Part shown: piece after piece, positions 3,859 to 47,111 of the stretch | Layout: every line of letters starts with the position of its first letter | How positions within the stretch are numbered: position 1 is the stretch's first letter | Origin: Oopsacas minuta | Lineage: Eukaryota; Animalia; Porifera | Reading direction: 5' to 3' | DNA: 64,000 nt | Assembly: GCA_024704765.1 (NCBI GenBank) | Contig: JAKMXF010000066.1 | Coordinates: 689,854 to 753,853 of the forward strand | Position numbers and translations under genes: made by a program | Notes under the pieces: generated by a model | What the model was told of the DNA's origin: nothing | Database searches by the model: none | What the model saw: only the letters and a program-made list of their open reading frames with translations

Positions 3859-6800
3859 CTAAAATAAGAATTGTAAGTCAGTGTTTTTCCAACTTTTTAA
3901 TTTATGGAGATGGACCCTCCTTTAACACATTCTGTTGTGGTAAAGATAATTATTAAAATAATTTAATCAGGTAGATAAATTTCCATTCTATCAGCTGTTT
4001 CTCTAATCAAACCACCACAGCATATGAAGAATGAATTTACAAATACAATAGCATAATTAGCTATGGTAATAACTGGAATTATAGGTAGTTCACCTAAAAT
4101 ATCTTTGTAGCAATAGGAGACTGCAGTAGTATAAATAGAAGAAAAGGCAGCACGAGAATATATATATATAACTAACAGCTAAAGATGTCTACAGATTACT
4201 TTTCAGATGCAAGTGAGAACTATAACAATAATTCGAACTGTTCATTCGTTAAAAAGTGCAAAAAATGTACTATTATAAGTGAGCCAGGTGACGTTACAAC
4301 AAAAGTTGGCAATTTCATTAAACTGTCAACAATCATAACTTCTCCCAACCCTAGCTATCAATGGTACGACGGCTCAGGAAGGCCAATACCTAACAAAACG
4401 CAGAGTACACTATTCATCGGCCCTGTTAAAGAAGAGGATTTCGGCTTTTACAAACTAGAAATAATCGATAGAACTACTGGAGAGAAAAAATACACTAGTT
4501 GGGTGGAGGTTAAAAAATGCGAACAAACTTTCTATCCAACGAAGCCAAGAGTAACTGTAACACCACGAGGAGGTTTATTCAGAAGGGGGGATACAGTGAG
4601 ACTATACGGATCATTTGAAAACGCTGTATACTACCAATGGTATAAAGACGGACACATGATTGAGGGATGTACCAACACTAATTTAAGTATTAGAAGTTGT
4701 AACAGTAGTAGTTCAGGAAGATACGTGCTGATGGCTTGGAACACCTTTGGCACTGAAACAACACAAGAAGTGGATGTGATGATACGGTAAAGGATATATA
4801 GTCAATGGACAAAAGTATTCGACCACACAAATATATTGTCATAAATGGTATACTCTTTCCCGCTCCTATGTATTGTATAGTCTATATTCGTGGCTGCAAT
4901 CTAGTAATTTGCATAGAATAACATATGTTTTTCAAGAGAATATTTTCGATTTACACTTTTTGAAGGTGTTAATTATTAATAATTATTAGATAATTATTGA
5001 CAGTCAAAATATGTGGTAATTCAAAACCTATTAAGAATCTGCAAGTTCTGACTTTGATATTTGAATTCTACGTAGGCGAGTTACCTCAGATTTAAATTTC
5101 CAATGGAATTGAACTATTTTTACCAAAGTTATAGAAGAATTTCAATTTGTGCCACTTGAGCCACCTTTTGCCCATGATGGCACAAGTGGCCGTTACCAAG
5201 AGGTTATTTTGTAATTCAAGGGTTAGCATAGTCATATCATTCGAAAATATTACTCTGACTTATTCCTCCTAACCCTAGTTCATTTCCTTATAGTGGCGCT
5301 TTTTCTGCCGCCTGTGCCACTTTTTTCAAAAAGTGGCTCAAGTGGCACAAATTGAAATTCTTCTATAACTTTGGTAAAAATAGTTCAATTCCATTGGAAA
5401 TTTAAATCTGAGGTAACTCGCCTACGTAGAATTCAAATATCAAAGTCAGAACTTGCAGATTCTTAATAGGTTTTGAATTACCACATATTTTGACTGTCAA
5501 TAATTATCTAATAATTATTAATAATTAACACCTTCAAAAAGTGTAAATCGAAAATATTCTCTTGAAAAACATATGTTATTCTATGCAAATTACTAGATTG
5601 CAGCCACGAATATAGACTATACAATACATAGGAGCGGGAAAGAGTATACATTTATGACAATATATTTGTGTGGTCGAATACTTTTGTCCATTGACTATAT
5701 ATGAATTCAAACTTTTAAATATCAATCATAATTGTTCAGGTACTTGCTGCTTAAAGGAATCTACATTAATCGTACAGCCCCAAGGAGGAACATTCCAGAA
5801 AGGTGAGACGATAAATCTGACAGCTCATTTTATGAATGCGAGATATTATCAATGGTATAAAGATGGTGAGATCTTATCAGGGTGTGAGGAAATACTTTAG
5901 TAATACACGGAAATGTAACTGAGAATACTGGAGAACTCATGATAGTTGCTTCTAACGACAGTAAGGCTACCGCTAAAACAACTGTAAAATACAGATAGTG
6001 TCATCTTAGAAATAAACATAAAAATATAATCAAAACTTAACAAATTAATTATTTAAATACCAATATTTTGTTAATAATCACCTCTCTGTCTTATTATTAA
6101 TCTTTATTGTAGTCTGTAATTAAATAAAACTGGAATGTATAAATCCTCCAAACTAATAATATTCGATTGAAATTCAAAATACAGTTTTGTGAAAATGATT
6201 TTGCTTTCTGGATTAGTAATTAGGATGGAACCTCGTTAATATCAACAGGATTAATAATCTTGTGATATTTATGGTTATACTTTCATCACAAACAGAATTT
6301 CAGTTCCTTTTGTGTTCTAAATATAACTCAGAAACAAATTCAGTTCATCTTTTGTTTTGAAAAGATGATAACCTTAAACTTGGGACTAAAATAGAGAAGG
6401 AAGTATTAATTGAATAATATTTCTAGCGTGCTAAATATAACTCATGGGTCCTTTGAATAGAAATAGGAGCAATTGTATACGCTCTATAATGAAAGAAGAA
6501 TTTGAAAAACCCAGAAATGCATTACCGATAAGGTATTACTATTACATCCAAGAAATAGATTACTTACTTCTGGAATATGATCACATTAGTTGGAATAAGA
6601 TTGGGAATATGATCACATTAGTTGGAATAAGATTGGGAATATGATCACATTAGTTGGAATAAGATTGGGAATATGATCACATTAGTTGAATAAGATTGGG
6701 AATATGATCACATTAGTTGGAATAAGATTGGGAATATGATCACATTAGTTGGAATAAGATTGGGAATATGACCAAATTTGGCTAAGAAAATTGACTAAAA

Positions 6801-9800
6801 TTGTTGTTTCCTTTCGAGGATATTTATAAATTGAATTATCAATATTTGCTTACAATCAAATTGTAAATATGTTATCATTTTCTAGGCAGATTACAAGTGT
6901 ACTATCTTAAATCGACAAAGAATTGTGATATTCAATTTTCACACCTTTTCAGCTCTCTAATTCATAATCATCCGATATAAATTCCCAAAATACAAATTGT
7001 ATAACTTTTCTTATGATTAATACTCTACAAATCATTTTCGGGGTTTAAAAAGTGTCCGTACAGATATAATATGATGTGGCTGTACTCTCCATAAACATGT
7101 CAGTATACATATATTAATACAATGCATTATCAAATATTGTATCATATGGTATTATCACTAAGAGATGCCCTTGGCATGGATGATGTTGGTAAGTCCGTAC
7201 GCGTGGTCCAATTGAAGATAGATACGCAGCTCGGATTATATAATTCATCAGATGAATATATTATCACACCTTTTTGTTGTTTAAAGCTAAACCAATCAGA
7301 TAGAAGATTAAATATTATATCATATCTTGACACGATCCGAGGCGCCACCAGTCTGTACGCTGGACATTCTTCTAGGTGACAAATGTCTTGACCTATCAGA
7401 ATAGGAAGTTGACACAGTTAGTGAAGGCTTCGGGAGACACGGACTATTATCCTCGATATGAAAACAATTTGTTGTAGAGTCAACTTTAATAAATACAATA
7501 AAGATACAATTCAACAAATAAATTGCATAACAGTTCTTTGATCGGCTAATTGAACCCAATTAGATAGAATATGTCTACCGTAATCGTCAGAAGCTAGACA
7601 TCTGTAATAACCAAAACTGTCCTTTTTAATTGGGGCAAATAATAAATATTGCCTCGTTTCTCCTGATAAAGGCATTCCTCTTTCATTATACCATTGATAA
7701 CGTATATTAACACCTGTGGCATGTACGAATATATTCTCAAAGTCACCAACACGTCCACAAGCAGGTTTAGGCTCAATCACAAAGACAGGGGGAGCGTGTT
7801 CAAGAGAAGATATGTCCACTAGCTCAATCCAACTCGATAGTAAGTGATCTCCGTAATAATCTTGAATTCTAACTCGATAGAATCCGAAATCTTCCTTCTT
7901 CAAAGGGCCTAATGAAAGAAAAGGTTTGCTAGCTCCTTGAATATTCAAACCATTTTGTCTGTACCATTGATATGTTAATCTTAAACCTGTTGCTTCAACC
8001 TTAAACACTACATTATCACCGTATGATGCATTCTGAGATTGTGGCTCTGATAATATTATCAAGTCGTTATGCATTTTCTTGTATAACTCGTATGAAATTT
8101 CAAAAGATTGTTTAGAGTGAAAGTGTATTGTGATTTGTTGTAATAGATTTATTCGCTATTATATATATTGTAGGGAAAGTGTATGATGTAATCTTTAATG
8201 TAAACAAATCGAAAGCATCTATGTTGTATCTACACGAATTGAAACGAATCAAAATAAGAGATAAAGATGTTGTTAATAAAGGTAGAATGGTATGTAACAT
8301 TTTAGTGAATGCTTGAAATACAAAGGGATGAGATCAATTATCGTTCGAGCAATAGCTGCCAAGCCTGCATGATGGTCCATGGATGTTTCATGCCTCACAA
8401 AGCCATATGCATGAATGCATTTTCTTTAGGACATGGCAATTACAGAGGTTATAGACGAATGAAAACTGCCAAACGAAAGTGAAATTATCAACAATCGAAC
8501 AATTAACATTAAAGATGATGATACATGCAAGATGCAATAAAAGTATACTTTTATGCTTAATGAATTGTTCCTTACAACGGTGTTTACCGTATTTATATTG
8601 CTTAACAGACAAATAGTCTGCCACTAACAGAGTTTAGGAAAGTACTCTGATTCACAAGCAATCATATTTTCCAAAAGTTTCTAAAATGCTAAATTTAGAT
8701 TCTCTAAAGTTTCGTGAAATATAGTAATGATATAATTCATGTAGAGAAGTCAATTAGAATGAAAGTGAAGGTGATTCCAATGTTTAGAATATGCCTATAT
8801 AAAGGAGTTTCGAATAGGAAAGTTTCAAAAGAGATAATTCCTAAAATACAATAATGAACCCAATACCAAATTACTTGATAATATTATCAGAGCCACAATC
8901 TCAGAATGCATCATACGGTGATAATGTAGTGTTTAAGGTTGAAGCAACAGGTTTAAGATTAACATATCAATGGTACAGACAAAATGGTTTGAATATTCAA
9001 GGAGCTAGCAAACCTTTTCTTTCATTAGGCCCTTTGAAGAAGGAAGATTTCGGATTCTATCGAGTTAGAATTCAAGATTATTACGGAGATCACTTACTAT
9101 CGAGTTGGATTGAACTAGTGGACATATCTTCTCTTGAACACGCTCCCCCTGTCTTTGTGATTGAGCCTAAACCTGCTTGTGGACGTGTTGGTGACTTTGA
9201 GAATATATTCGTACATGCCACAGGTGTTAATATACGTTATCAATGGTATAATGAAAGAGGAATGCCTTTATCAGGAGAAACGAGGCAATATTTATTATTT
9301 GCCCCAATTAAAAAGGACAGTTTTGGTTATTACAGATGTCTAGCAAGTGATAAGTTCGGTAGACAAATTCTAAGTTGTTGGTTGCATTTAGCTCATCAAT
9401 AATCGAAGAAAATTATATTATTAATCATATGTATGTATATGAGTATAACTTTATCACTTCAATCACCATTAAATCTTTATTATAAATAAAGTGTCAAAAT
9501 GAGATAATTTATAATTTTAGTTCTTAACGATCTGCTTCGCTTGCTCGCGCTGTGTGGCTTGCTAACAGTTTGTGTTCGCATGGGACTCGGCACTTCGTGC
9601 CTAGAATTTAGCAAAGTATAAAGTTGCAAAATGATATTTCAATAGATTGAATTTACACTTATTAACGTCAGTCAATTGCAATTCAATTAAAAAGTCCAGT
9701 TTTTTCCAAAAATTTGTGCAACTTTGCGGTTGCAAAAATATTACTTAATACCAAAGAATCAATGGCTAAATAAAACTGAAAATATAACACTATGTATAAG

Positions 9801-12800
9801 GAATGCATACATAGGGTGAGGACAGCTGTCTATACATATGTTATGTCCATTTGCAAATCGCTATTGACAAAATCGACATAACAAATATATGTAGAACCAC
9901 ATAATCAATACTAATGTAGTAGTGTGAACGTATTATCGTAAACAATTTGCATAAGAACTACATAATACTGAAACATTGCAATGTACGCATGAAGTGTTTC
10001 CTTCAATATATATTATAAATATATCTGTAAAAAATTGAATGAAGGCTAATATGCAAAATAGTAATTACAAAGCTACGTATAGTTTCAAAATTAGCCATCA
10101 AAAATTTTTTTTGCTTCCAAGTTTTGTAACAATGAAAGCAATTCAAAGTATTACTATCAGTTTACGTAAAATTTGTTAAATTTCAAACCCGATGCAAAAA
10201 TCTTTATTACAAACAATACAAACAAACATATTACTATATACATATGCGCATATACTATTAACAAGCAACACAACATCGTGATATTAAAAGGAAAGAAGCT
10301 AGTGAGGAAGACACAAATACGCTCTCTGATCACAGTGCTAATGCTAACAGGGATTATTAATATTTGACAATCATAACTGTGATTATTATAATAAAATGCA
10401 GGACTATTTAACAATGTGTGATGCGAGCTATGTGTCGAATATAATAATTATACCCAGAAATTAGCAAGCTGTCTATTAATGGGTTTTTAATGGTTTATAG
10501 TTTTCTAGATATTCTGGTGGCTGTTCAGAACTAAACTCCAAGAATGCTTGCCTGGCCATTTCCCTTAGCTTATCATTTCCAGCCCGTATTTTAAGATAAC
10601 TTTCTTCAAGGGTCTGCTCTCTAGAGACGAATTCACTTCCATGCTGAGTGACTATCTCATCGAAAGGTAACTTTCGGGAGTGAAGTTGATTTGAAGTTAG
10701 AGGATGAGAATATGAAGAAATCAGTAATGGATCAGGTCTCTTTTCGCATAGCTGCAATATAGACCATTTTGTTCTGAGATGAAACCCATAATAATCCCTT
10801 GCTACTAATCTGTATTGATAGTTTAAATGAGCTGAAGTAACAGGTCCAATCGTCAATGTTTCTTTGAACTCATTCATCAATACTTGGATAGCCCCTTTAG
10901 AGAGCACTTCCCAGTAAAACACAAGATTTACGCCAGTTAATACCGGAGAAATTGTGACGTAACTCCCAATATTACAATAGTAGACAAGATCTGCTTCTAT
11001 TTCCACTTTTGGCCTCTCGGGTCGAGAGTACTCACCACGAAAATTATCAGAATGCATTAAGGAGAGTATAAATCAAAATACAGTAGAAATCGGGTTTTTG
11101 GCAATTTCTTTCCACGAGAAATGAAGACAAAAATAAACTTAGTTAAGGTAATGTATTGAAACATCTCCCGCATCATAATATATAGGCTGGGATGTTTCAA
11201 TGTATTAGAGTAGGATAATAACAAAAGTTCAGTTTGTGTGATACAAATTACGGTTACCCATTTAGACAATTCGACTGCTATGGATATATTATTTTATGAA
11301 TGTTCAAAGGCATAATAAACAATACATTACTTACCAGATGAGCTGTGGAGTAATCAGGTTCTTGCATTGTGAAAAGGAACAAAATATGATCACGTGCAAT
11401 ATGCTAGAAAAATGGTAAAATATTGAATACAGTAGCTAATATTAAAACTTCTAATTTTTGCAATATCTCTACAACTCTGAGATGTGACAAGAATTCGCAA
11501 GTCGAGCAGGGCAACATAGTGAAAGTATATGTAACTGTGATGTTAACATGCTAGATTTTCACTTTGAATAGTAACTGGAACTGAAAGTAAAACACATTTC
11601 AAATTACATTAATAATGATATAATGAATTGAAAGTATCCGTAATTGCCACATAATAGTGTCAGTTATATTTTTAAAGGTAAACTGAAAGCCCTACCGCTG
11701 ATATTATTAGATAAAGAATAATACATGCAAAACCTTATAAAGATAAAATGAGACAGAATCTTAGGTGTCTTGGCTAGAGCTAATATATTTAATTCTATTA
11801 AAATATAACACCAAATTGGTGGATGTGGATCACAAACAGCTTGTTAAGCATTTTAATTGGGATAATTTAGAGAAAACCCGATATCCTCGTTCATAATACA
11901 GTGGAACCTACTTAACGACCACATTGGGCCAGTCCCTTCGGTAGCCGTTATTGACATGTTTGACTGTAATAACATTTAGAATGTTAAAATATGTAAGAAT
12001 GGTTCGTGTTGCTTGCGCTACCCGGCTTGTGAACTCAGAGATTCACTTAGATATTCGAAATACTTCCGAGAAATACAATATTGAAGATACGTGCCAATTT
12101 CTTGTATGGCAGTCCTTAACAATTTCTCAATCAACTCTGCGCAAACGAAACTACAGTTGAATTTATCAAGTAAACAAATATGACAACAATTAGTAAACAA
12201 AACTGACAAAACCTACCAAATATATAGGATCAGGGACGTTGTGTATTTTTCCCCATCTCTTGGCTAGTTGAAATTCTCCTTTTCTAGACAAATGCCTTAC
12301 AAGAATTTGAGGCATTCTTTGAGTTTGTTTCTTAATATCTCTCCAATGTTTCCATTCTATACATCCTCCTATTTTTACAGATTCTTCATTGCTTAATTGA
12401 TTTACATCTGGTCGGATAAGTGTGTTCATTATCTATAATAAAAAATAGTAATACAAAATCTCAAATCACTCAAAAATATACAAAGATTACCTCGGAATAA
12501 ACTTTAATTTTCTCCAGCTGGTTATGGAGTCTTTGTTTCAAACTCGACTCTCCAATCAAATTCGAATAAGCATGCTGAAGGATATTCAAACACAATTGGG
12601 TATCATTCCATTCATATATAATATCCATTACAATCTCCCCAAGCAATTCAAAGTTAGTTAGCTGCATTAGAAACTTGAATGATTCTTCACTCGACGCAGG
12701 AGCGCGCGTGTGTTCAAATTCCTCAATTTTTTCGCGTTGTCGACGTATATAATTAATACACCCAATCAGAATCAAGTCTTTTATCTGTTTATACCATTGA

Positions 12801-15800
12801 CACTCACTGTAAGGCAAAAAGTTCTCAGAGGTGATAATGTCGAATGAATTTATCCATCTGCGTTTGGCTATGAGATGATCCAATGACAGTATACATGTTT
12901 TTATGGAAGGGGAATTTGCTTTATCACCCAAAAATAAATCGTGAATATTGAAAAAAAGTGGTTTGGATGAAGCATCCGGTAATTGTTCAAAACTGATAGG
13001 TGGAATTATCTCTATTTGTTGGAGGTGTGTGGTAGTTTCACTCGCATCTGAAAGAATGAATGTGGTTATTTTCCTTGCGAAAGCTATTGTAATGAACGAA
13101 TCTTCGAAGTATGATTTAAGGACAGGGATATCTGAGAAAATATTCAGAATTCGATCTTTGTTTCTATCAAAACTGGAGTCATCTTCATACTCCGAATTCT
13201 GAGTGGGCAAATTCCTTGAAAATAGCCTAAAAGGCACAATTCCAGATTGTTTGTCGTTGCTAGCGACAGAAGATACACTTTTAATACTCTGTAATTTTTC
13301 GTCTTCAGAAACTGAAACGCGTTTTGATAATCCTAACGGCTGAGTAGGTAAACACACAAATGTTGCTAGTTTAGATAACACTTTGCTATGAGTAGATATA
13401 TAATGAAGGGATGATTCATTGAGGGAATATTTAACAAGTGGATCTTTGGGTTTGGATGTGTCGGGACCGATAAATGGAGAAACGTGGAACGTAGTTGACA
13501 CTTCCAGGAGATTAGTCCCTACACATTGTGTAAAGAATCCAAATCGCCAAATATGGGGAATAATTTCCAATGAGTTCTTTATCATAGCTTGGAGGGATTT
13601 TGGGAGAAAAGGTTGCAAATTCAGTATTATTAAATCTCTTTTATGCTCATATGACAACTCTCTTTTCGTATTGAAATGTGAAGCATACCATGTGAGGAAT
13701 TCTGCAATTCTGACAATTCTGACATCCTAAAAATAGACTTGATACACATTGTACTAGAGGTTTCATTACAAAATTTGGTACTCGTGTTACGAACTTGAAC
13801 TATAGTTCATCCTATTGTTAATTCAAAATAACTACTAAGCAAATGGTCTGCACAGTATAAAGAATATTATGATGTATTGATCTTATTGTACTACTGGAGT
13901 AAACATGTAATGTCAACAATGTTTTGTGAACAAGTTACTGGAAATTGTTTTGAGACTGATGTGAATGTAACTTGCGAGATATTAGGGTATCTTACAGCTA
14001 CACAAAGTTAACTAACCTTTGCAGTTTGTGGACGTGGTTCAATATTGATAGAACAAAAGGCTGTTGTTGAGGTGGTCAGAACGTCTTGCAAGTTTTCTTT
14101 GTTTAAAATCTAAATAAACCACATTTGAATCGGAAACTTCACGAATAAATACCACACAAAGTTCAGGTTAGTAGCTTCCACAGGAAAATTCAGATATTCT
14201 TCCTAACAATTAGTACAAGATTTGATCGTTTGTTTTGAGAAAAGTACGTACTAACAGAAAGTAAGTCATAAGCCGAGTACATACTAACCGAGTTCTACTG
14301 TATTTGTAAATTGGACTGGACCCCTTGTCCCATGGCCATGTGACCCACGTAAGTAGTATTGCCATAAACATGGACGACTAATATTAAGCATTAGAGCTCA
14401 TCATAATTTCTGTATTGTCGTATACAAATCTACACTGTAGAAATATACACAGATAATTGTGGTAGACCAATTAGATTTACTGTAGACATACGTATTTAAT
14501 ATTTAGATATTTTTAGCCAAATGTAATTACTTAAAATTACAACAACAACAAAAAGTAATAAAAACAGATCACGTATGACACAAAATATAAACAAAAGTTA
14601 TACATAACAAGCTACGTAGTTCTACCTTTGCTTTAATATTGCCGAGTATACAATTTCCTATAACGAAGACTAATCGTGTATCAGTTTGTTTGAGAGCAAA
14701 GTCTCTAAATCTATCTCTCTTATTTGACGTATACGTCAAGGTTCTGAGGCCTTTTGAAGCAATGAAGCTCTCATCGAGTGCGTGTAACTTCAAAATCTTA
14801 AATTGTAGGTCCAAAAGGCTAGAGAGAAATGTAGAAGTTAGGAAAACGGAAAAACAGTGTTTTGACAAAAATGTTTATTAGATTTTAACCATGGATGGTG
14901 AATTTCTTAACTTTGTTTTGTTTATTAGTTCCTATTCCAAGAAATATGATAGTTTTGTTAGAAACAGCTCACCCCTTCTGGAACAATATTTATTATTTTA
15001 ACACGGACATTTATTAGTTCTGTATCCCTTAATTAACCTAAATGTAAAGTACACAATCATCAAATGAAGTCAAAAGATACAGAAAGATAGTCGCATATCT
15101 TTGGGAAGAGAACTTACAAATCCTATGAGAATTCCTGAAAAAACAAACAAACAAACAACAAACAAATGCTACGTAATACCATGTTCGGAAATTTCTAGGT
15201 AATTTTCATGAATAACCCGAACTAACTGACTCTTATAATTAATCATAGTCCAAATTGTGGCTGTATGAAGTATTTGCAATTTTAGCTAACGTATTATAGC
15301 CACATTCTAGATAATATTAGATGAGTAAGCTTCCAGTATATGAAACCGTTCACCACAGAAAATGATCATTATTACATGATGTAATTACCCTACGATGGAA
15401 TATGGAATAAATTGAAACCAGCAGTATTAACCTCAATAGATTACTGAATCAGTTATCTAGAACTACGGTTGGAACTAGAACTAGAACAAATGGGTGTTAA
15501 CATACACCAACAAAGTAGATACATGAGTGTATTCAAATCAGTTTATCCACTAGAAGATACTATACAAGGAAATGGAGCCTCAATACAGAGATTCAATTTC
15601 AAAAATACTGGCAATGCTTTGGAGAAATGCTAAAACCTGATAAGTCAAGAGATTTTGTCACCTATCTGAGAGAGTTTAGTTCAGATATTTGAAAGAGCCT
15701 TTGATGTAGCATATTTCATAGATATGCCAAATCTCAAGTTTGTAGCTCTTACTTATTCTTCAATAAACTCAGACAAAAAAGTTTCAATAATAATTGTATA

Positions 15801-18800
15801 TTCAACAGGTCAACCAATATTCATATCAGAAACTCTATATTCAGAATTAACAGGAAATTCCTTTAGAAATGGAGAGGAATGTGATTGAATATTCAGCTGA
15901 ACCTTGGCTCCGAATAAAATATGAATAATCTATATTCCATAAAAGTGAATGAAAGTATGTAAATTTGTATTTCCAGCAATAGATCGACGAGTAAACTCTA
16001 TGAACCCTAACAGATGTACGTTCTATCGCTAACTAAAAAGCATTGAATATGTTAACTCCATAAATAGAGATTTCTAACCACCAACAAGATAGTGCAGTTG
16101 TTCTGGTCTATTCATTCCAGAAACTTACTGTAATACAACTCATGAATATGGAAATACATGATATATCCCAGAAGATCGTAACTATTATTATAATCTCCCT
16201 ATTAAATACACAGAACCAATATTCCTGGGGTATAGAACCTAGTAGCACTCGCTACAATGAACTTAGGAGAAAGTAGAAGAATATTCTCTTACGCAACATA
16301 TGAATAATATCTAATATACAAATTCTCAGAAAATGTATTAGGTCAAAGTATTTGTATAATTACATAAGATCATTGAAGTTAGTTTTTGCTGTTTGTATTC
16401 ACTGGAATTTTTGTAAATTCTCACAAAATATAGGAGAAGTAAATCAATAAACTCTGACTTTATCCAAAATATTAAACTTAAAAGTGGAAATCCACCTTTT
16501 GATTCAAGAGGAGCATCTCTAGAACCATTGAAAGATAATGAAGTAGCTCCACAAATTGGAACAGATATCTAGAACTCTGAAGTGTGAATCCCATCAACTG
16601 ATTATTGATGTAACATAAGAATTAGTTTGTCTGTTGTATATCTACTTGTCTTAGTATTTACTTTACTATTGTCTATTACCCAATATAGATAATCCAGGTC
16701 AGTAGCTATGTGTTACAATAACTTTGGTAGTCATTATGTATCAGTAAAATTACATATAAGATAATAATAAATGAATCTTGGAATTTGCAAGTATATTTGA
16801 GGAAGAAAAGTTGATCAGATTGAAAACAGCTGTCCAAATTACAATCCTAGATATTTCAATAAGATTCTGTTGAATATACAAAACTAATAATACCATATGA
16901 ATTCCAAATATACTTTCACAACTACAAAACAGTTATCCTTCTTTAAATACAAAATACTTTTCAAATATTCTACATGTGTTCACACTATGCCTGTAGAATA
17001 TACAAATACATAATTCATACTAGGATATAATATAAATTAAGAGAGGGGTAGACAAAGTACAAACATTTCTGCAACTTCTAAGATGATATCAACTAACAAG
17101 GTAATTATCCTTATAATACTCATATTATATTGTTTTGTACTGGTCAAAGGCAACTGTGGAAATAGCGAAATAGACTGCAATAATGGTAGAATTGGTTATG
17201 ACTGCCGTATTAATGGACAAGACACAGATGCAATACAACAAAAAATGTACGAATGTTCTCAAGGAAATCGGGTCGACCTCAATATTTACATCATGCAAGG
17301 GGGAGAAGGCGTTACATTAAATCTAAGCTTACCGAGTAATATAGAAGGTTTGAGTTTGAATAATAACATCGAGACAACGTGTCATGTTGAAACTTCTTTG
17401 ATAAATTCAAATATTACAACAATAGAATTTCACGGCTATGAAGTATTCATCAATCATAACGACTTTTTCACATATTTCCCGAACGTTAAGCAGATCTACT
17501 TGGATTACTTAGGATCGAATTTAATGCCATTTTTCACTGAGAATATACATACAACTAGCATAGAAGTATTCGAATCATCAATAACGGAAGGAAATGGTGT
17601 CATAGATCGGAGTATGATAGGGGGACTAGAGAAATTAGAGCAATTTAGATGGTATTATGGAAATATAAAAAAATTAATGCCCGATTCTTTTAACGGAACA
17701 AAAGTTTTAAGATATTTGGGCTTTATAGGTAATAAGATTCATGAGTTATATGACTGTACTTTCCTGGGTTTACTGAATTTGCAATATCTGTATCTGGGAG
17801 GTAATGACATAACCAAAGTTGGAAAGTACACATTCATCGGTCTGGAAGATTTACAAGTCGTACGCTTGGAAAACAATCCATCATTTCCATTATCGACTCT
17901 TACAGTAGCGAAGAAAATTAGAGAACTAAACATAGAGAATTATAATCCTGCGTTATTGAATCCAGAAATTTTTCAACAACTCCCAAGATTATCAGATTTA
18001 AAGATGAGAGAAATTTCATTTGATTGCACCTGTGAAATGGAGTGGATGTCAAAAATAGAAAATGAGTATAGGATCCGAATATATATAAACTCAAGAGGGT
18101 ATTGCCCGAGAAATCCAAGCCTCCAAGTAGACGATCCCAGCCTTTATGTAAACTGTAGTAACCCCAGTTATCAGTGCCTCGATCGTTCAATAGTATGTCC
18201 TGGGGATAATACGTGGTATAAAGTTGATACAGAAGATGGTTGTAACTGTACTTATCCACCAGAACGTGCCTTCTACAATGATAGTAGTTTCGTATGTTCA
18301 GACATAGATGAGTGTGAAGACAGTAGTATTATATGTCAAGGTAACTGTACTAACACAATTGGTTCCTACACATGTGATTGTCGTGAAGGATACATTAATC
18401 TCAATGAAACGTTCTGTAATGACGTGAATGAATGCGGGGTAGATAATGGAGGTTGTGAACACAATTGTACCAACACCATCGGTTCATTTCTATGTTCTTG
18501 TATCCAAGGATACACTGAAAATGGAACAGAATGCATTGACATAGATGAATGCGAGGTAAACAATGGAGGTTGTGATCAGAATTGTACTAACATCAACGGT
18601 TCATTTCTATGTTCTTGTTTCCAAGGATACATTGAAAATGGAACAAAATGCATTGACATAGATGAATGCGAGGTAAACAATGGAGGTTGTGAACAGAATT
18701 GTACTAACATAATTGGTTCATTCGATTGTTCATGTTTTGATGGATTCAACAAATCCCCTACCAACAGTAGTGACTGTGATATCGCTCCTGTCAATCCTCA

Positions 18801-21800
18801 AATCTTCAACTTTGGTGAGACTGAATTCATTCTCATCATATTCGGTGTTATAGTTTTCGTTCTACTCGTATTGCTTATCCTGATATTCATAGTAATCTTG
18901 TTCTGTTTCTTTACGAAGAGATGGTCATATTCACCCAAACAGATACCTGGGTATAATCCTACAATTGCTGAATTAGACAAGAAGAAAGCCAATGAATCTA
19001 CCGTCATACAAAACCCACTTTCTGACTCAGTAGTATACTCTTCAGAACCCTTCAAAGAGAACAAAGTATCTCCACAGGTGTGATCAGATACTCTCACATC
19101 TGAACTCATAATCACGTCAGCTGATTGTTAAGTTATGTTTTACATTATTCTATTAAGGTGTCTGTTGTAAGTATTTACTTTTGTACATATTTATTCACAT
19201 TTTGTTTATATTCTATTCATATCTATTCTAGGCTTGTAAATATTTCCTTACAATGACTTTGTAAGTAATTTCATATCTTTTGTTGTTGATTAGTGCTAAT
19301 TTGTGTGATAATAAACTGATTTGTATTTACAACACTGATACAATTCCTTAAACACAAACTTACAGAATATTGTTTGATATTAGCAATATTATATTTTAAG
19401 GATATTTGTTCTTACAATAATTCTATAGATGGAACCATAGGAGTAGTATACAGACTATAATAGAATGTTTATGGCATATACAACTTAGGCTCATAATCAG
19501 CTGTTTTACAATCACTCAACTCTGATTGAATCGATACCAGTAAAACGGAATTAATCTGTATGTACATATGTGTGTGTGTAGTATATGTTTATGTTTGTAT
19601 GTTTAGAATTGATTGAAGGAACTGGAAGACCTACAGGGCTGATTTTAGGGTACAGGTGTATTATGGGTCTAGAACTAATGAGTATTAACATACACCAACA
19701 AAGTAGATACATGAGTGTATTCAAATCAGTTTATCCATTACAAGATACTGTACAAGGAAATACGAGCCTCAATACAGAGATTCAATTTCAAAGTACTGGC
19801 TATGCTTGGGTGAAATGCTAAAATCTGATAAGTCAAGAGATTTTGTCACCTATCCGAGAGAGTTTTAGTTCAGATATTTGAAAGAGCCTTTGATGTAGCA
19901 TATTTCATAGATATGCCAAATCTCAAGTTTGTAGCTCTTACTTATTCTTCAATAAACTCAGACAAAAAAGTTTCAGTAATAATTGTATATTCAACAGGTC
20001 AACCAATATTCATATCAGAAACCTTATATTCATAATTAACAGGAAATTCCTTTAGAAATGGAGAGGAATGTGATTGAATATTCAGCTGAACCTTGGCTCC
20101 GAATAAAATATGAATAATCTATATTCCATAAAAGTGAATGAAAGTATGTAGATTTGTATTTCCAGCAATAGATCGACGAGTAAACTCTATGAACCCTAAC
20201 AGATGTACGTTCTATCGCTAAATAAACGCATTGAATATGTTAACTCCATAAATAGAGATTTCTAACCACCAACAAGATAGTGCAGTTGTTCAGGTCTATT
20301 CATTCCAGAAACTTACTGTAATACAACTCATGAATATGGAAATACATGATATATCCCAGAAGATCGTAACTATTATTATAATCTCCCTATTAAATACACA
20401 GAACCAATATTCCTGGGGTATAGAACCTAGTAGCACTCGCTACAATGAACTTAGGAGAAAGTAGAAGAATATTCTCTTACGCAACATATGAATAATATCT
20501 AATATACAAATTCTCAGAAAATGTATTAGGTCAAAGTATTTGTATAATTACATAAGATCATTGAAGTTAGTTTTTGCTGTTTGTATTCACTGGAATTTTT
20601 GTAAATTCTCACAAAATATAGGAGAAGTAAATCAATAAACTCTGACTTTATCCAAAATATTAAACTTAAAAGTGGAAATCCACCTTTGATTCAAGAGGAG
20701 CATCTCTAGAACCATTGAAAGATAATGAAGTAGCTCCACAAATTGGAACAGATATCTAGAACTCTGAAGTGTGAATCCAATCAACTGATTATTGATGTAA
20801 CATAAGAATTAGTTTGTCTGTTGTATATCTACTTGTCTTAGTATTTACTTTACTATTGTCTATTACCCAATATAAATAATCCAGGTCAGTAGCTATGTGT
20901 TACAATAACTTTGGTAGTCATTATGTATCAGTAAAACTACATATAAGATAATAATAAATGAATCTTTGGAATTTGAAGTATATTTGAGGAAGAAAAGTTG
21001 ATCAGATTGAAAACAGCTGTCCAAATTACAATCCTAGATATTTCAATAAGGTTATCAGAAAGAAAATAAGATTCTGTTGAATATACAAAACTAATAATAC
21101 CATGTGAATTCCAAATATACTTTCACAACTACAAAACAGTTATCCTTCTTCAAATACAAAATACTTTTCAAATATTCTACATGTGTTCACACTATGCCTG
21201 TAGAATATACAAATACAATTCATACTAGGATATAATATAAATTAAGAGAGGGGTAGACAAAGTACAAACATTCCTGCAACTTCTAAGATGATATCAACTA
21301 ACAAGGTAATTATCCTTATAATACTNNNNNNNNNNNNNNNNNNNNNNNNNNNNNNNNNNNNNNNNNNNNNNNNNNNNNNNNNNNNNNNNNNNNNNNNNNN
21401 NNNNNNNNNNNNNNNNNNNNNNNNNNNNNNNNNNNNNNNNNNNNNNNNNNNNNNNNNNNNNNNNNNNNNNNNNNNNNNNNNNNNNNNNNNNNNNNNNNNN
21501 NNNNNNNNNNNNNNNNNNNNNNNNNNNNNNNNNNNNNNNNNNNNNNNNNNNNNNNNNNNNNNNNNNNNNNNNNNNNNNNNNNNNNNNNNNNNNNNNNNNN
21601 NNNNNNNNNNNNNNNNNNNNNNNNNNNNNNNNNNNNNNNNNNNNNNNNNNNNNNNNNNNNNNNNNNNNNNNNNNNNNNNNNNNNNNNNNNNNNNNNNNNN
21701 NNNNNNNNNNNNNNNNNNNNNNNNNNNNNNNNNNNNNNNNNNNNNNNNNNNNNNNNNNNNNNNNNNNNNNNNNNNNNNNNNNNNNNNNNNNNNNNNNNNN

Positions 21801-26760: not shown

Positions 26761-29700
26761 GTCACTAAGATCTATATTTTGCTCAAAAAATGTTTGCACA
26801 CAAGATTGAGAACTTCACGCGGGTGTTCTCCGTCCAAATATTCGTTATAATAATTCTGAAGTCTATCTTACCTGTATTTTGATGTATAGATAATTTCTGT
26901 GTAGCATTCTTCAATAGCTCTCTACCAGTTTCATAAGATATATCATAAGCACAAAGCAAATCAAGAATTATCAGAGAAGGAACAAAATTAACCAACTGCC
27001 TAAGTATAACAGATTCCTTTGCACGGAGTAACATGCTCTCCTGACCTGATAGCATTATCTTGGATAAATTAGTGCTAATTAAAATGTTGTTTAGTTCGTC
27101 TTTAACAACAGAGTTCTTGGATAAATACACTGTTAATTTATCGTAATCTTCTGAGCTCACTGTTTCTCCCTTCATTATCTCGATCGGATCGAAAGTTGGT
27201 TCCTAAATACAGTACAACTTTATCAAGAATATGATTCAACAGTTTAGCCAAAAAATATCCGTCTAGACATACTGAGTTAACCCTCAGACCTGATAGGCGA
27301 CACATTAATCACCTGCTCTCAGACATGGGTTAATTGATTTATCAAATTCCACACAATTGCCTAATTTCAAGTTAGCAGCGCTTAATTACTAACTGTGCGG
27401 ACAGCAAGGTCATAGAAAACCCCCAAAGTGGTATTCTAAATTGGAGGCACTAAGTGTATTAAATCTATACACGTGTAATGCCTTCAGATTAATATCGGGA
27501 CTGACAAAATATATATTACCTCATCTTGTTTAGTGACAGCAGACAATTCACACCCAATAGACTCCATTTTCTCAGCAAAATGAACCATCTGTGCGCCTAT
27601 ATGTCCCTCTAGTTTGAAAATCTTAACAACTTCATAAGCTGAAACGAAGTTCCCCAGTTTTAAGCACATGTTTAAGAGGTTAACCGGTGAAGATAGCATT
27701 TTTCTAATTATATTCTGTTTAGATGAATAATCTCGGGAAAACTTCTCATTTTTCCTTTTATGCTTACGAACTGGAAATCCAGTTTTCGGTTTCGGTTTAA
27801 GAAATATTTTCTTATCTTCTGTGTCTCCTTCATCTCCAGAATCTCCGATTTTTAATTTCAGAGAACTGGTTTTCCCTTTCTGTTCGCGATCTGACAAGAA
27901 TATAACCTCTGACTTAGTGTAGAGGCCTTTTTCATGAGGTTGAGGTTTCCCTAGAGATATTGAGGAATGTCTTCTGTCGCCTAAAGTATAAGTATAGAAA
28001 ATATTCAGAAATATAAAACGGGAAATTAGACTCGTTTGAATTATGAACACATTCGTAATAGGGTGATTGATTTAAACTAGGGGTTCCCAACCCGCGGTTC
28101 ATGAACCTCTTGGTGGTCCACGGACGACAGCAGGGGATCCACAGAATGGAGGGGTCCACAAAATGTGTAAATTGGTATACAGGATCCACGGGGAAGCGCT
28201 GATGTAAATTATCTACTTACCAGTTTCCATATCGTCCTCATCATTACTGAAGTCTATATCACTTGAGCTTTGAGTATCAGCCCCAATATTAAGCTCAGCC
28301 TCCCATTTACTACACACAGCATCTTCTGTATAAGATACAGTACTGTCTTCTAGCGAGCATGTTGGTGCTTCTGTTGTTGTTACGAGTTTGTAACGCCATG
28401 TAGCTTCGTTAATGCATTTCTCAAGCTGACTCAAGCGTGAGTGAAGAATGTCGTGATTAATGGATGAGTATACGGATTGTTCCGAAGCTAAAAGGTAAGA
28501 GGCACCATATGTACTGAGCCACCTGGGGATAAATACTGTCGGCACAGATTGTTATACTTATCACTAACCTGCAGGCCTCAATTCCCCAGGGATAGATTCA
28601 CGTCTAAAAGCATAACGAGATGTCTGTATATCATAAATAGCATCTCTTAACAACTGCAACATCTTCTCTATCATAGGCCGGGACAATAAGAATCCTGTCG
28701 CAACAGGTTCTATTCGTTTCTCTTTAACAAGGGAGTTTGTTGAAGCTGAAAGGCTTGAAGATTGCTCTGAATCTGTGTCATTAGATACTATTGAGATAGT
28801 TTGTTTATATCCAACATTCCTTGAGATTGATAAAATAAGATATTCTCTAATATCTGACCTAAAGGATTAGAAATACCGACAACTTACACAGCAAAAATCA
28901 AAAATAGCCGAAGAGATGTAAACATATAAGTAAACAACAGATCTCTACATATATGCATATATGTATGCAAAATTTGCTTACATGCTAATATTTTCATCCA
29001 AAATATTAATAAATAATCAAAACTCGTTAAATATGGGACCAAATAATTTCTATTCCAAGTGGAGTTGCAAATAGCATATCATCCGAATAGTAGCCGACGT
29101 GATTATTCACATTTTAACACCTTTGGACGGAAGACATATATGTAATCACATACTACACACCATGAATCACAGCATTCTATACATGAATCTATTCACCAAC
29201 TCCTAACGTGCTTCTGTGACGTTGAAAAATAAGGTATGTCCCAGTTTCCATGGTTACCTCGTTGCTATTTGGCTACACCCCTCAGCGAGGGAGAAGATCA
29301 TTACAGGTGCTACTATTCGGTAAATTTTATTGCTATTAGTATATTAATTTGTTATACCTTGTGTAGTGTTGACTACGAGTAGTATCTTCAGAATCACAGC
29401 CATCAACAGCTAAATTCTCATACTTCAGGAATAATAGTGAATAAATGTTCTCAATTATCTCCAATCTAAACAAACAAACAAACAAACAAACACATAAATA
29501 TACAGTAGAGAGTGTTTCGAAAATAGTGATAAATACCTGTAATATAACGGGTAAATAGACTGCAAATAATTTTTAACTTCCTCTAGAGTTCTATTAATAA
29601 AACCGTCTACAGCTAATATCAGGCTAGTAGTATCTGTAACAGGAATCTTATCCGATTCACAAGGAATATTCGTTTGTAGAGAATCTGTTACTGTAGTGAA

Positions 29701-32700: not shown

Positions 32701-35700
32701 ATAAGTTTCCGGCAGATTGAAATGCGAGAAACTCACACATGGATTAATAGAAATTAATGATTACTTTCAGTTTCGATAATAGATTTAATATTTGTACAGC
32801 TGTTTATCTCTAATCTCACTGGCGGCGTAGCCAGCTGCTACTGATAGGGCACAAGCCCTAACCTGGACCCACCCACGGGTCTCTTCTGAATTTGTCCACA
32901 CAATTAGTATATCATTCAAATCTTAAATGTAGAAAATGAAAGTACAATTGAATATGGAGATAGATGTTACTGAAAATTGTATATGAATCTAAAAATAATT
33001 TAAACTCTCAAACAAACTGAAAACTAATTCTGTAAAACCATATATTGTCGCCAGAAATGAAAAGTAATATCCAAATACAAAATATTCCAAAAGGAGCTAT
33101 TTTACAATTACAAATTCAATATCAACTAACAAATCAGTGTAAATATAGAAGTACAAATGAAAATATTATATTACTATCAGTACTCTATGGAACTAAATGT
33201 AGTTATGTAAATCGTGTCAAATGAAAATAAGATTTGTGACGTAAAGACTTGCACAATCGTACAGAAAATCAAGATATACATATGATTAATTGAACAAGGA
33301 ACTTCAGATTTCAAAATAGACTCCCTCGCTGAAGGGTGTAGCCAAATGCCAACGAGGTAACCATGGAAACTGGGACATACCTTATTTTTCAAAGTCACAG
33401 AAGCACGTTAGGAGTTGGTGAATAGATTCATGTATAGAATGCTATGATTCATGGTGTGTAGTATGTGATTACATATATGTCTTCCGTCCAAAGGTGTTAA
33501 AATATGAATAATCACGCCGGCTACTATTCTCTGTAATACAGTATATCAAATTTCAAACAGGAGTAACTTTCATATAAATAACATAACGGTGAATAATATA
33601 AATACATTTTCAGTTAAAATAATGAGGCAAGCAATTAAAGCTATCACGGATTAATCAAAAAGTTCATCACTCCTTTTACACATATGATTAACTGGAAAAA
33701 ATGAATTTCTCAAAAACAAAATGATAAAAATAACAAATCTCAGAGAGGTAATCTCAAAATTGCGACAGTATAACGTGTTGTAAATGAGATCTAAGATTCT
33801 TGCAATTAATAGGAATAAATAACAATAATTATTGTTTACTTCATAGTACAATGATATCAAGAATAATTTTGAATAATATTTGAGGAAAAACATGTGAGCG
33901 CGAAGTGCAAATATATTTTTATATAAACTTAATGAATGGGTCACGCTTTCAATATTCAAAAGTATCCTAATCATATTTCACTGAAACTGTCTCTGTAACA
34001 AACATAAACACTTTTGTGATACAAAATTTCTTGAAGAATTATTTATTACAAATCGTTGAATAGAATAATGCATAAAGGAATGGTCACGCTTTCGAAAAAA
34101 TGATCGCCTCCCTCGCTGAGTGATATAGCCAAATACCAACGAGGTAACCATGGAAACTGGGGCAGGAACACGTTAGGGAGTTGGTGAATATATTCGTGTA
34201 TAGAATGCTATGATTCATGGTGTGTAGTATGTGATTATAGATTATGTCTACCGCCCAAGGGTGTTAAAATATGAACAATCACCTCGGCTACTATTCGAGG
34301 AATACACCTAGGAGCAAATCTCACATTAATAATCAACCATTAAAATTACATCACAAATGAAAAAGCAATTAAATTCACACATTTATGCTAATTCTTATTT
34401 GCAGAAAAGGACTTCAAACACACACACTAGGCTTATTCATAATACACACACGTTTCAGCAATTTATATTAATAATGATGGCAAGAATATAAGAAATAAAT
34501 GGGTGCTATAATTCACACATACGAAGTAAAAGTCTGGGAAATTATAATAATACTTAAGTTCGGATAATCATTTAATAATATCGGTGGGGTATGCGTACAT
34601 TTAAGTTCGTGTAGATGTTATACAAATCATTTCTCTGAATAGAATCGAAGAAACAGTTAGAAATGGACATATGTTGATATAATTATTGTGAATTGGCTTA
34701 GGAACATAAATTCCAGTTTAAGAGTATAACATGATAACTTCACCGATATTAAGACCATTCAGTGAATTTCCTTATACCGGATATAAGTTCACTATTAGCG
34801 TTCGGATTTATTTCTGCTATCACAATACTGTCATAAGGTAGGAAATGGAACTCTAGAACAAGTATATTAGTTCGGCTAATGAGAAATACATTGAAACTTC
34901 CAGAAACAGGGACTGTGGACTGGGAAGCATTTTCGACCTCCCTACTCCCGTGTGTGGAGGCTGCACTGTAGCTAAACTGTAGCAACCCTGAAAATTCAAG
35001 GCAACAACTTCCATTAATAAGACTGCAATCTATTCCATAGTAAAGATGACTACTAGCTTCCTATATTATTAAGGTTATACTGAACTAGCAAAGAAGTACG
35101 CAGATAATCAACACTTCATCACATGTATATTGATGTGATGTAGCATCACATATTCGGATGTATATTATAATACGCATGTCAAAGTGAACTGCGACAAAAT
35201 TATAAAATTTTGAGATCTCCATAAAACGCAAAAAAGGTTAATGTAAGTTGCATTTTTCATGAAAATATTTGTTGAATACGAGTAAATTCGAATAAGTATG
35301 ATATTTTCTAGCCTTTTTAGAATTTCACTGTTGCTAAACCCAGATTCGTGAAAAGTGACAATTTCTGAACGAATTTCTTCTAACATGATTTTCTGGGAAA
35401 TCATCAACTTGAATGATATATACTTGGTATAATTCGAAAGAGCGCCAAAAATGCTACAAGAAATTCTAGAAGATTACTTCATAAGTATATTAATAGCTAC
35501 TGTCTAAGGCGCCAAAATGTATAACAGAACTTATTAGACACCCTGTAGACTTCATCTGTATGTAGATATTCTCCAATATGGATATATCTAAAATCTACAA
35601 TCTACAAATATTGGCTAATTCAAACGATAGATTGAAAGTAATACAGTTCGTTCCAAGTTATATTTAGTTCAGGAAATACATACTTGCAGTAGATGCAAAA

Positions 35701-45902: not shown

Positions 45903-47111
45903 GTAATTAATTCAACATTTACACAAAACCAAAATACATACATACATGTATTATCCTATAACAAATCTAGATAACAATTATACTAATCTTCTTCTTCATT
46001 CTCTGTGTTAGATTCATTCTTTAGGCTAAATTTCCTGATTCTGTAAATAATCCTTTTGTGTATTGAAGATATGAAATTCATCATGTTTATGTTATTGTTT
46101 ACTAAATAATTCATCTCATATTTATACTATAAACTGTGTTTATTATTAGATTATTGGTGTAACTGTTTACAAATTAGTTGGTATAATTGTGTTACCATAA
46201 CTTCACATATGTCACTATAATGAACACATACAAATAAACAAAATGATGAAGGAGTTCAGTGATGGCTTCTAAGTGACATGATTACCACACTAATCGAGCT
46301 AAAAATATTTCGGTAACATGTCTGCGAAGTTTAGAAATGTAATTATCATTTATTAATAACTATCCTCAAAGCCTCCCTCTGGGTGGCTTTTTCTGCTAGT
46401 TACTGCGGAATGCTTTTCGGATCTTCAGCCCTCACGATTGTCTTTTGGAGTTTGCAAACGCTAAGCGTATTATACAAAGAAAGGAATCTGATTGGCCAAC
46501 GTTGACCAATCAGATTCCTCCGAAAAATGCATTGATTTATATGGGTGAGGTGTGAAAATTCACATATCTGGTCTAAAATGGTTCGATTCAAATAATTCTT
46601 TTTTGTATGGGTTGAGTACTACTCCTGAGAGCTCAATGAGCCTCTGGAGCCATTTTCAGCGAGTCTAAGTTCTCTTACTGCTAGTTTATACGTGTATATA
46701 GAGTATTCTCTGTTAATTAACGTATACTAATGTCATGTCACTTAGAAGCCATCACTGAACTCCTTCATCATTTTGTTTATTTGTATGTGTTCATTATAGT
46801 GACATATGTGAATTTATGGTAACACAATTATACCAACTAATTTGTAAACAGTTACACCAATAATCTAATAATAAACACAGTTTATAGTATAAATATGAGA
46901 TGAATTATTTAGTAAACAATAACATAAACATGATGAATTTCATATCTTCAATACACAAAAGGATTATTTACAGAATCAGGAAATTTAGCCTAAAGAATGA
47001 ATCTAACACAGAGAATGAAGAAGAAGATTAGTATAATTGTTATCTAGATTTGTTATAGGATAATACATGTATGTATGTATTTTGATTTTGTGTAAATGTT
47101 GAATTAATTAC
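45903..47111. repeat. Large inverted repeat, 379-bp arms (45903-46281 / 46733-47111), 451-bp spacer; foldback-like element
   Basis: Arms are reverse complements with about two mismatches seen. Confidence 0.92.
46483..46518. promoter_or_regulatory. Inverted pair of CCAAT boxes (ggaatctgattgg-N10-ccaatcagattcc)
   Basis: Perfect 13-bp palindromic arms each containing CCAAT, between two divergent genes. Confidence 0.4.

Follow-up and report, generated by a model that had tools for sequence, protein, structure and literature searches.

Probable interlocus gene conversion in an inverted pair of immunoglobulin-domain genes of the glass sponge Oopsacas minuta

Two immunoglobulin (Ig) domain genes of the glass sponge Oopsacas minuta lie head-to-head on one chromosome and share a coding core of 472 nucleotides that is nearly identical in reverse complement, whereas the sequences that directly adjoin this core are still homologous and have strongly diverged. 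The pair was pointed out in an earlier note on a 64,000-nucleotide stretch of DNA (assembly GCA_024704765.1, contig JAKMXF010000066.1, positions 689,854 to 753,853 of the forward strand; this whole stretch is called the window below, and positions are given in its numbering), and the observation of an inverted Ig pair with the appearance of conversion is confirmed here. The reading that we favor, with a probability of roughly 85%, is that these genes are an old inverted duplicate whose coding core has been kept near-identical by interlocus gene conversion, which is a well-known process and requires no new mechanism. The pair would thus be a clear example of concerted evolution in an animal lineage that branched off early, and it cautions that glass-sponge paralog trees and duplication dates will be misleading wherever gene cores have been homogenized.

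The left gene, here called OmL, is an intronless ORF on the minus strand (positions 7511..8074) that encodes a protein of 187 amino acids with two Ig domains, a C-terminal helix and a terminal cysteine (...RTVMQFIC). The right gene, OmR, is an intronless ORF on the plus strand (8854..9402) and encodes 182 amino acids; its two-Ig core is that of OmL, whereas its N-terminus differs (MNPIPNY...) and its truncated tail ends in HLAHQ before the stop codon. Both genes are single-exon, complete and transcribed divergently; both products match Pfam Ig_3 (E about 4e-9), and both intact ORFs are annotated, since the OmL protein is found residue for residue in NCBI nr and UniRef and that of OmR likewise in NCBI nr. 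The ORFs, the Pfam matches and the alignment agree with the proposal of the earlier note that the locus encodes two proteins with a shared two-Ig core and different termini. An AlphaFold2 model of OmL, for which 14 aligned sequences served as input, has a mean pLDDT of 85 and places Ig1 at residues 1-87 and, after a linker, Ig2 at residues 97-178, followed by a helix at residues 179-186. As read from the sequences, neither protein has an N-terminal hydrophobic segment or signal peptide, so OmL and OmR are probably not secreted, and they are taken to be cytosolic.

The homogenized tract runs from 7593 to 8064 on the minus strand in the left arm, corresponding to OmL codon 4 through codon 161, and from 8873 to 9344 on the plus strand in the right arm. 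The earlier note gave these coordinates and the 472-bp extent correctly and described the arms as identical in reverse complement; a base-by-base comparison of 7593-8064 with 9344-8873 finds them to match at 471 of 472 positions. The single difference pairs 7823 (minus strand) with 9114, where GAG faces GAA, so that both codons specify Glu and the change is synonymous, and the longest perfect run within the tract is 241 nt. The two arms of the tract are separated by 808 bp on the same molecule, and a search of the genome (61,460,524 bases in 365 contigs) found exactly two copies of the tract, which rules out a transposable element as its origin.

Homology between the arms is longer than the tract itself. 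A repeat search reported inverted arms at 7538-8075 and 8862-9399 (538 nt, 96% identical), and gapped alignment extends the homology into the 3' flanks, to 7457-8075 paired with 9484-8862, so that it ends approximately at the start codons on one side and reaches past the stop codons into the region of the polyadenylation signals on the other. In the left arm, the diverged homologous 3' flank (7457..7592, minus strand) encodes the FG loop, strand G and tail helix and contains the stop codon, the start of the 3' UTR and an ATTAAA at 7490. Its counterpart in the right arm (9345..9484, plus strand) contains the TAA of OmR at 9400-9402 and an ATTAAA at 9468, with an AATAAA adjoining at 9485. Expressed in protein terms, the tract begins just before strand A of Ig1 and stops at the end of strand F of Ig2 (the YRC motif), which leaves as paralog-specific the initial residues together with the FG loop, strand G and tail helix of Ig2.

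The transition between these two states of divergence is abrupt and not gradual. On the 3' (gene-end) side, 17 of the 55 nucleotides directly beyond the tract are mismatched, as are 5 of 11 on the 5' side, so that matches fall from 471/472 inside to 38/55 and 6/11 outside; the contrast between 1/472 and 17/55 mismatches gives p = 2.8e-17 in Fisher's exact test. The peptides that the earlier note had quoted for the genes just outside the tract, SDDYGRHILSNWVQLADQ and SDKFGRQILSCWLHLAHQ, are correct, and the 31% of bases that differ there bear out its description of sequences that are homologous but diverged, as the sharpness of the edge bears out its description of the boundary. Synonymous sites follow the same pattern: by the Nei-Gojobori method, dS is 0.010 (one synonymous difference) and dN is 0 over the 156 codons inside the tract, compared with a dS of 0.41 and a dN of 0.37 in a 3' flank of only 19 codons. 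The differences in this flank include two serine switches between TCT and AGT, plus three simple synonymous changes. Purifying selection can be ruled out as the cause of this contrast, since synonymous sites are affected and the core is not slow-evolving, its protein sequence being only 62-79% identical between assemblies. In addition, GC-biased conversion is rejected, as no excess of GC3 was found in the gene (0.26, compared with 0.32-0.36 in neighboring genes).

Relatives of the pair in other assemblies provide a further kind of evidence. Six such clusters, all from ENA or Logan assemblies, came out of a word-based protein search, and a scan of metagenome contigs for relatives found none. 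The lineages were labeled Sp1 through Sp6 by contig, with distinct sequences on contigs of equal size taken as copies on one contig: Sp1 (contigs of 443,390 and 293,435 bp), Sp2 (785,562 and 472,265 bp), Sp3 (2,473,602 bp), Sp4 (369,966 and 467,231 bp), Sp5 (161,432 and 566,854 bp) and Sp6 (short contigs). All comparisons across species were made at the protein level, and at this level the cores of different copies are 97-100% identical within an assembly, as opposed to the 62-79% between assemblies. The termini are of two types, one (type A) with an N-terminus of the form ...K(S/K)PII and a tail of the form ...NWVQL...MQQ(I/L)C, and another (type B) with an N-terminus ...(K/R)(S/R)ISI and a tail ...F(K/R)DIC. 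For example, the A and B copies of Sp1 and Sp2 are 97-98% identical over a 154-residue core and only 44-64% identical in the 25-residue tail, whereas same-type tails from different assemblies are 64-72% identical.

Phylogenetic analysis of these two portions of the protein gave incongruent trees. In the core tree, copies cluster by assembly, and a type-B clade is rejected (delta lnL 142, p-AU 1.6e-5). In the termini tree, a type-B clade spans four assemblies with support of 98/99, and arrangements that unite the A with the B termini of an assembly are rejected in Sp1 (p=0.007) and in Sp2 (p=0.016). These AU p-values are optimistic because the labels A and B were assigned with the alignment already in view and the termini provide only 35 columns; the direction of the result is nevertheless plain. 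The observation that cores group by assembly and termini by two shared types indicates that gene conversion has probably been recurrent across these lineages. Together with the jump in synonymous divergence, this incongruence among the relatives supports what the earlier note had proposed for the pair, namely recent arm-to-arm gene conversion within an old inverted duplicate.

The O. minuta termini themselves do not split into types A and B: those of OmL and OmR group together weakly, on the non-B side of the tree (support 52/53). Their tails are 59% identical to each other, and the left tail is 52-64% identical to the tails of other assemblies. Since these termini are not assigned to either type, it is the divergence of its flanks that suggests that the O. 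minuta pair is old.

The relatives also provide information on where the exchanged region ends and whether exchange continues. The place at which the copies first differ in residue agrees among O. minuta, Sp1 and Sp2 to within one or two codons at the 5' end and to within about eight at the 3' end. At one site in Sp2, K is found in the A copy and R in the B copy of one assembly, and the reverse is found in the other assembly; in Sp3, four copies carry mosaic combinations of variants. Both patterns fit a continuing exchange of sequence between copies, as judged from the proteins. The four Sp3 copies (P0004, P0014, P0015 and P0016) are on the contig of 2,473,602 bp; three are near-identical throughout, and the fourth departs from them in its first ~35 residues only, which places the conversion boundary elsewhere in that lineage.

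Three other explanations for the O. minuta pair were weighed. The first is an assembly artefact, in which a true difference of a few percent or more between the cores was erased by bubble-popping or polishing, or in which one arm is a chimeric fold-back. The genome was assembled as a SPAdes hybrid of corrected PacBio and Illumina reads and then processed with SSPACE, Pilon and GapFiller (PMC10280926); since such pipelines can fuse repeats with a few percent of divergence, and since SPAdes was run with k up to 99, so that a 472-bp repeat exceeds k and its collapse is possible, the 99.8% identity of the arms and the sharpness of their edges may be overstated. However, each arm is set in unique, intact and different flanks, the 779-bp spacer between the genes is unique, and one mismatch survives within the tract. 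In addition, independent assemblies contain near-identical cores (97-98% at the protein level) joined to different termini, and the 2-3% by which those cores differ indicates that the pattern itself is biological. An artefact could have raised the identity of the arms from ~97% to 99.8%, but it could not have created the pattern, and we regard it as very unlikely to account for the pair.

Even less probable, in our estimate, is that the locus is an invertible cassette, in which the spacer would be inverted by reciprocal arm-to-arm recombination, so that promoter and N-terminus change places between the two tails in a regulated or frequent switch. The geometry of the locus would permit this, since a crossover within the in-frame tract yields two intact chimeric genes, but no long ORF, and no recombinase ORF, was found in or beside the spacer, and a Pfam scan of the neighboring ORFs returned only Ig, EGF and LRR families. 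Moreover, a single orientation is seen here, and in Sp1, Sp2 and Sp5 the type of N-terminus is linked to the type of tail, which argues that no inversion has been fixed in those lineages. The weakest of the three is that the whole gene was duplicated very recently and that, without gene conversion, only the termini then diverged fast. This reading draws on the weak grouping of the two O. minuta termini and is scarcely credible, as dS climbs from 0.01 to 0.41 inside a single exon and no mutation rate can shift 40-fold at a codon boundary, the types of termini in Sp1 and Sp2 are older than the split of the assemblies, and the two O. minuta tails differ from each other about as much as the left tail does from those of other assemblies.

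Under gene conversion of an old inverted duplicate, we infer a repair mechanism, a direction of copying and a cause for the boundaries as follows. The core would be copied from arm to arm by non-reciprocal homologous recombination that does not lead to a crossover, and because the arms lie so close together on one DNA molecule, a break or gap in one core could readily be mended with the other as template. Two portions of the protein, a short N-terminal leader and a C-terminal region (FG loop, strand G and tail helix), would lie outside the copied stretch and so retain their old divergence. The tract probably ends where identity becomes too low for extension of the heteroduplex, in which case the boundaries would be self-perpetuating, and selection for distinct tails may add to their maintenance. 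A broader proposal is that the genes form a module of one core and two tails that has kept the same codon boundaries since before several glass-sponge lineages split, with the tails held distinct by selection; that the pair is one case of a genome-wide habit, among glass sponges, of keeping small gene pairs in short palindromes whose arms repair one another; and that OmR is decaying, its core open only by virtue of being overwritten. As a whole this proposal is possible but, in our judgment, unlikely.

The stop codon of OmR, the right copy (TAA), is located where OmL reads AGA, and the DNA past this stop still aligns to the tail-coding part of OmL and to its 3' flank. A terminal hydrophobic stretch followed by Cys (...MQxIC or ...FKDIC) is found in every relative of either type and in OmL (...MQFIC), and OmL is the full-length ancestral form. 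OmR thus carries a premature stop through which the conserved C-terminal helix and terminal Cys have been lost. Because the core is regularly overwritten, the open frame of OmR is weak evidence for selection on OmR itself, and overwriting by OmL may account for its intact core as much as such selection does. An intact reading frame, as in the tail-less OmR, therefore need not signal selection on the copy in which it is found.

The two start codons are separated by a spacer of 779 bp (8075..8853) that lacks a long ORF. The earlier note had envisaged that both genes are driven from one divergent promoter region of ~780 bp, and this part of its account is not borne out: a search for inverted (arm-to-arm) homology between the halves of the spacer found none, which rejects a shared symmetric promoter, and each start has a TATA-like string of its own (at about 8150-8165 for the left gene and at 8797-8806 for the right), even if such strings are weak evidence in AT-rich DNA. 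From their appearance, the starts of OmL and OmR do not look like the two sides of one shared promoter.

Interlocus conversion between close inverted paralogs is known from the hsp70Aa/Ab pair of Drosophila and from paralogs of Caenorhabditis. Such conversion is well documented (PMC3966223, PMC3924832). The O. minuta pair resembles these systems in that the paralogs are inverted and a few hundred bp apart, that a bounded near-identical tract is embedded in older homology, and that copies group by species within the tract and, in the relatives Sp1 and Sp2, by orthology outside it. It differs from them in its host, a glass sponge, and in tract boundaries that, at the protein level, appear to fall on nearly the same codons across several lineages. 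In the literature searched, no paper connects hexactinellids with gene conversion of nuclear paralogs. A second point of comparison is provided by the palindromes of mammalian sex chromosomes, which undergo arm-to-arm conversion, have arm identities of >99%, are far larger and have been reported to show GC-biased conversion (PMC3723533, PMC8981503). Both systems have inverted arms around a unique spacer and an identity that is kept by intrachromosomal conversion. In contrast to arms of many kilobases that are >99% identical throughout, the Ig pair has arms of ~0.62 kb in which an inner tract of 0.47 kb, comprising the core only, is homogenized, and it shows no GC enrichment.

Among known structures, the best PDB neighbor of the OmL model is the Ig1-Ig2 module of human MALT1 (3K0W; Foldseek E=1.1e-10, TM 0.51, 23% identity). 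A profile of the sponge family also matches 3K0W (E=1.4e-9), in a match that includes a strand G resembling the ...FSQWSQL of MALT1; this is the third-best profile match, and by sequence the Ig-like domains of two phage tail proteins (9c2d, 9ncf) outscore MALT1. Like the tandem Ig module of MALT1, the sponge proteins have two Ig domains and lack a signal peptide; unlike MALT1, these ORFs of 182-187 aa consist of the two Ig domains plus a short helix and have no death or caspase-like domain. Because the phage domains score higher by sequence, the likeness to MALT1 is treated as generic to this type of Ig domain, a resemblance rather than membership of the paracaspases. The possibility of a paracaspase gene was also rejected from the paralog on contig C22, which is another Ig-only gene, of 214 aa.

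The pair is part of a local cluster of diverged Ig-only genes, of which the C22 gene is a further member. Within the window, the cluster includes an Ig-only gene at 4185-4790 on the plus strand that is 29% identical to the pair, an Ig fragment at about 5730-5900 on the plus strand, and an Ig-only gene at 10476-11057 on the minus strand; the head-to-head pair contains the only homogenized members. Two further ORFs on the minus strand gave no matches, one of 553 aa (218-1879) in an Atlas search and in Pfam, and the other (12470-13657) in Pfam. A tandem repeat with a 32-bp unit in about nine copies is present at 6529-6814, between the Ig fragment and the left gene of the pair.

Several other repeats are present in the window. 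Between two of the Ig genes, at 4794-5702, is an inverted repeat whose 377-nt arms are 99.5% identical and flank a 156-nt spacer; it belongs to a multicopy family with 423 candidate sites in the genome, and 38 other copies, among the matches listed, are 89-92% identical to it. This repeat is probably a fold-back or MITE-like transposable element that is unrelated to the Ig palindrome. A second unique palindrome (45903-46281 and 46733-47111) has 379-nt arms that are 99% identical, a 451-nt spacer and two genomic copies, and each of its arms contains only a 43-aa ORF. An inverted pair of 209 nt (29085-29293 and 33321-33529) is 97% identical, with the two members 4 kb apart. In total, the 64-kb window contains two unique inverted pairs that are at least 98% identical, the one transposable element and the one 209-nt pair, and a survey of 200 kb of contig C66 for unique inverted pairs (200 nt or longer, more than 93% identical) found none; the sample formed by these 200 kb and the window is too small and too biased to yield a rate.

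A direct duplication (15481-17120 and 19669-21325) with a period of 4.19 kb, 94-99% identical in blocks, is located in an array of receptor genes with LRR and calcium-binding EGF domains, and could be either a recent tandem duplicate or a homogenized one. Finally, an exon that encodes part of a FYVE domain (E=1e-11) is found on the minus strand 7.5 kb before the window (C66:682253-682387). It is consistent with a large FYVE gene that spans this region, in which case the Ig cluster would be intronic, and the pre-mRNA of the host gene would hold both arms of the Ig pair and could fold into a 472-bp hairpin.
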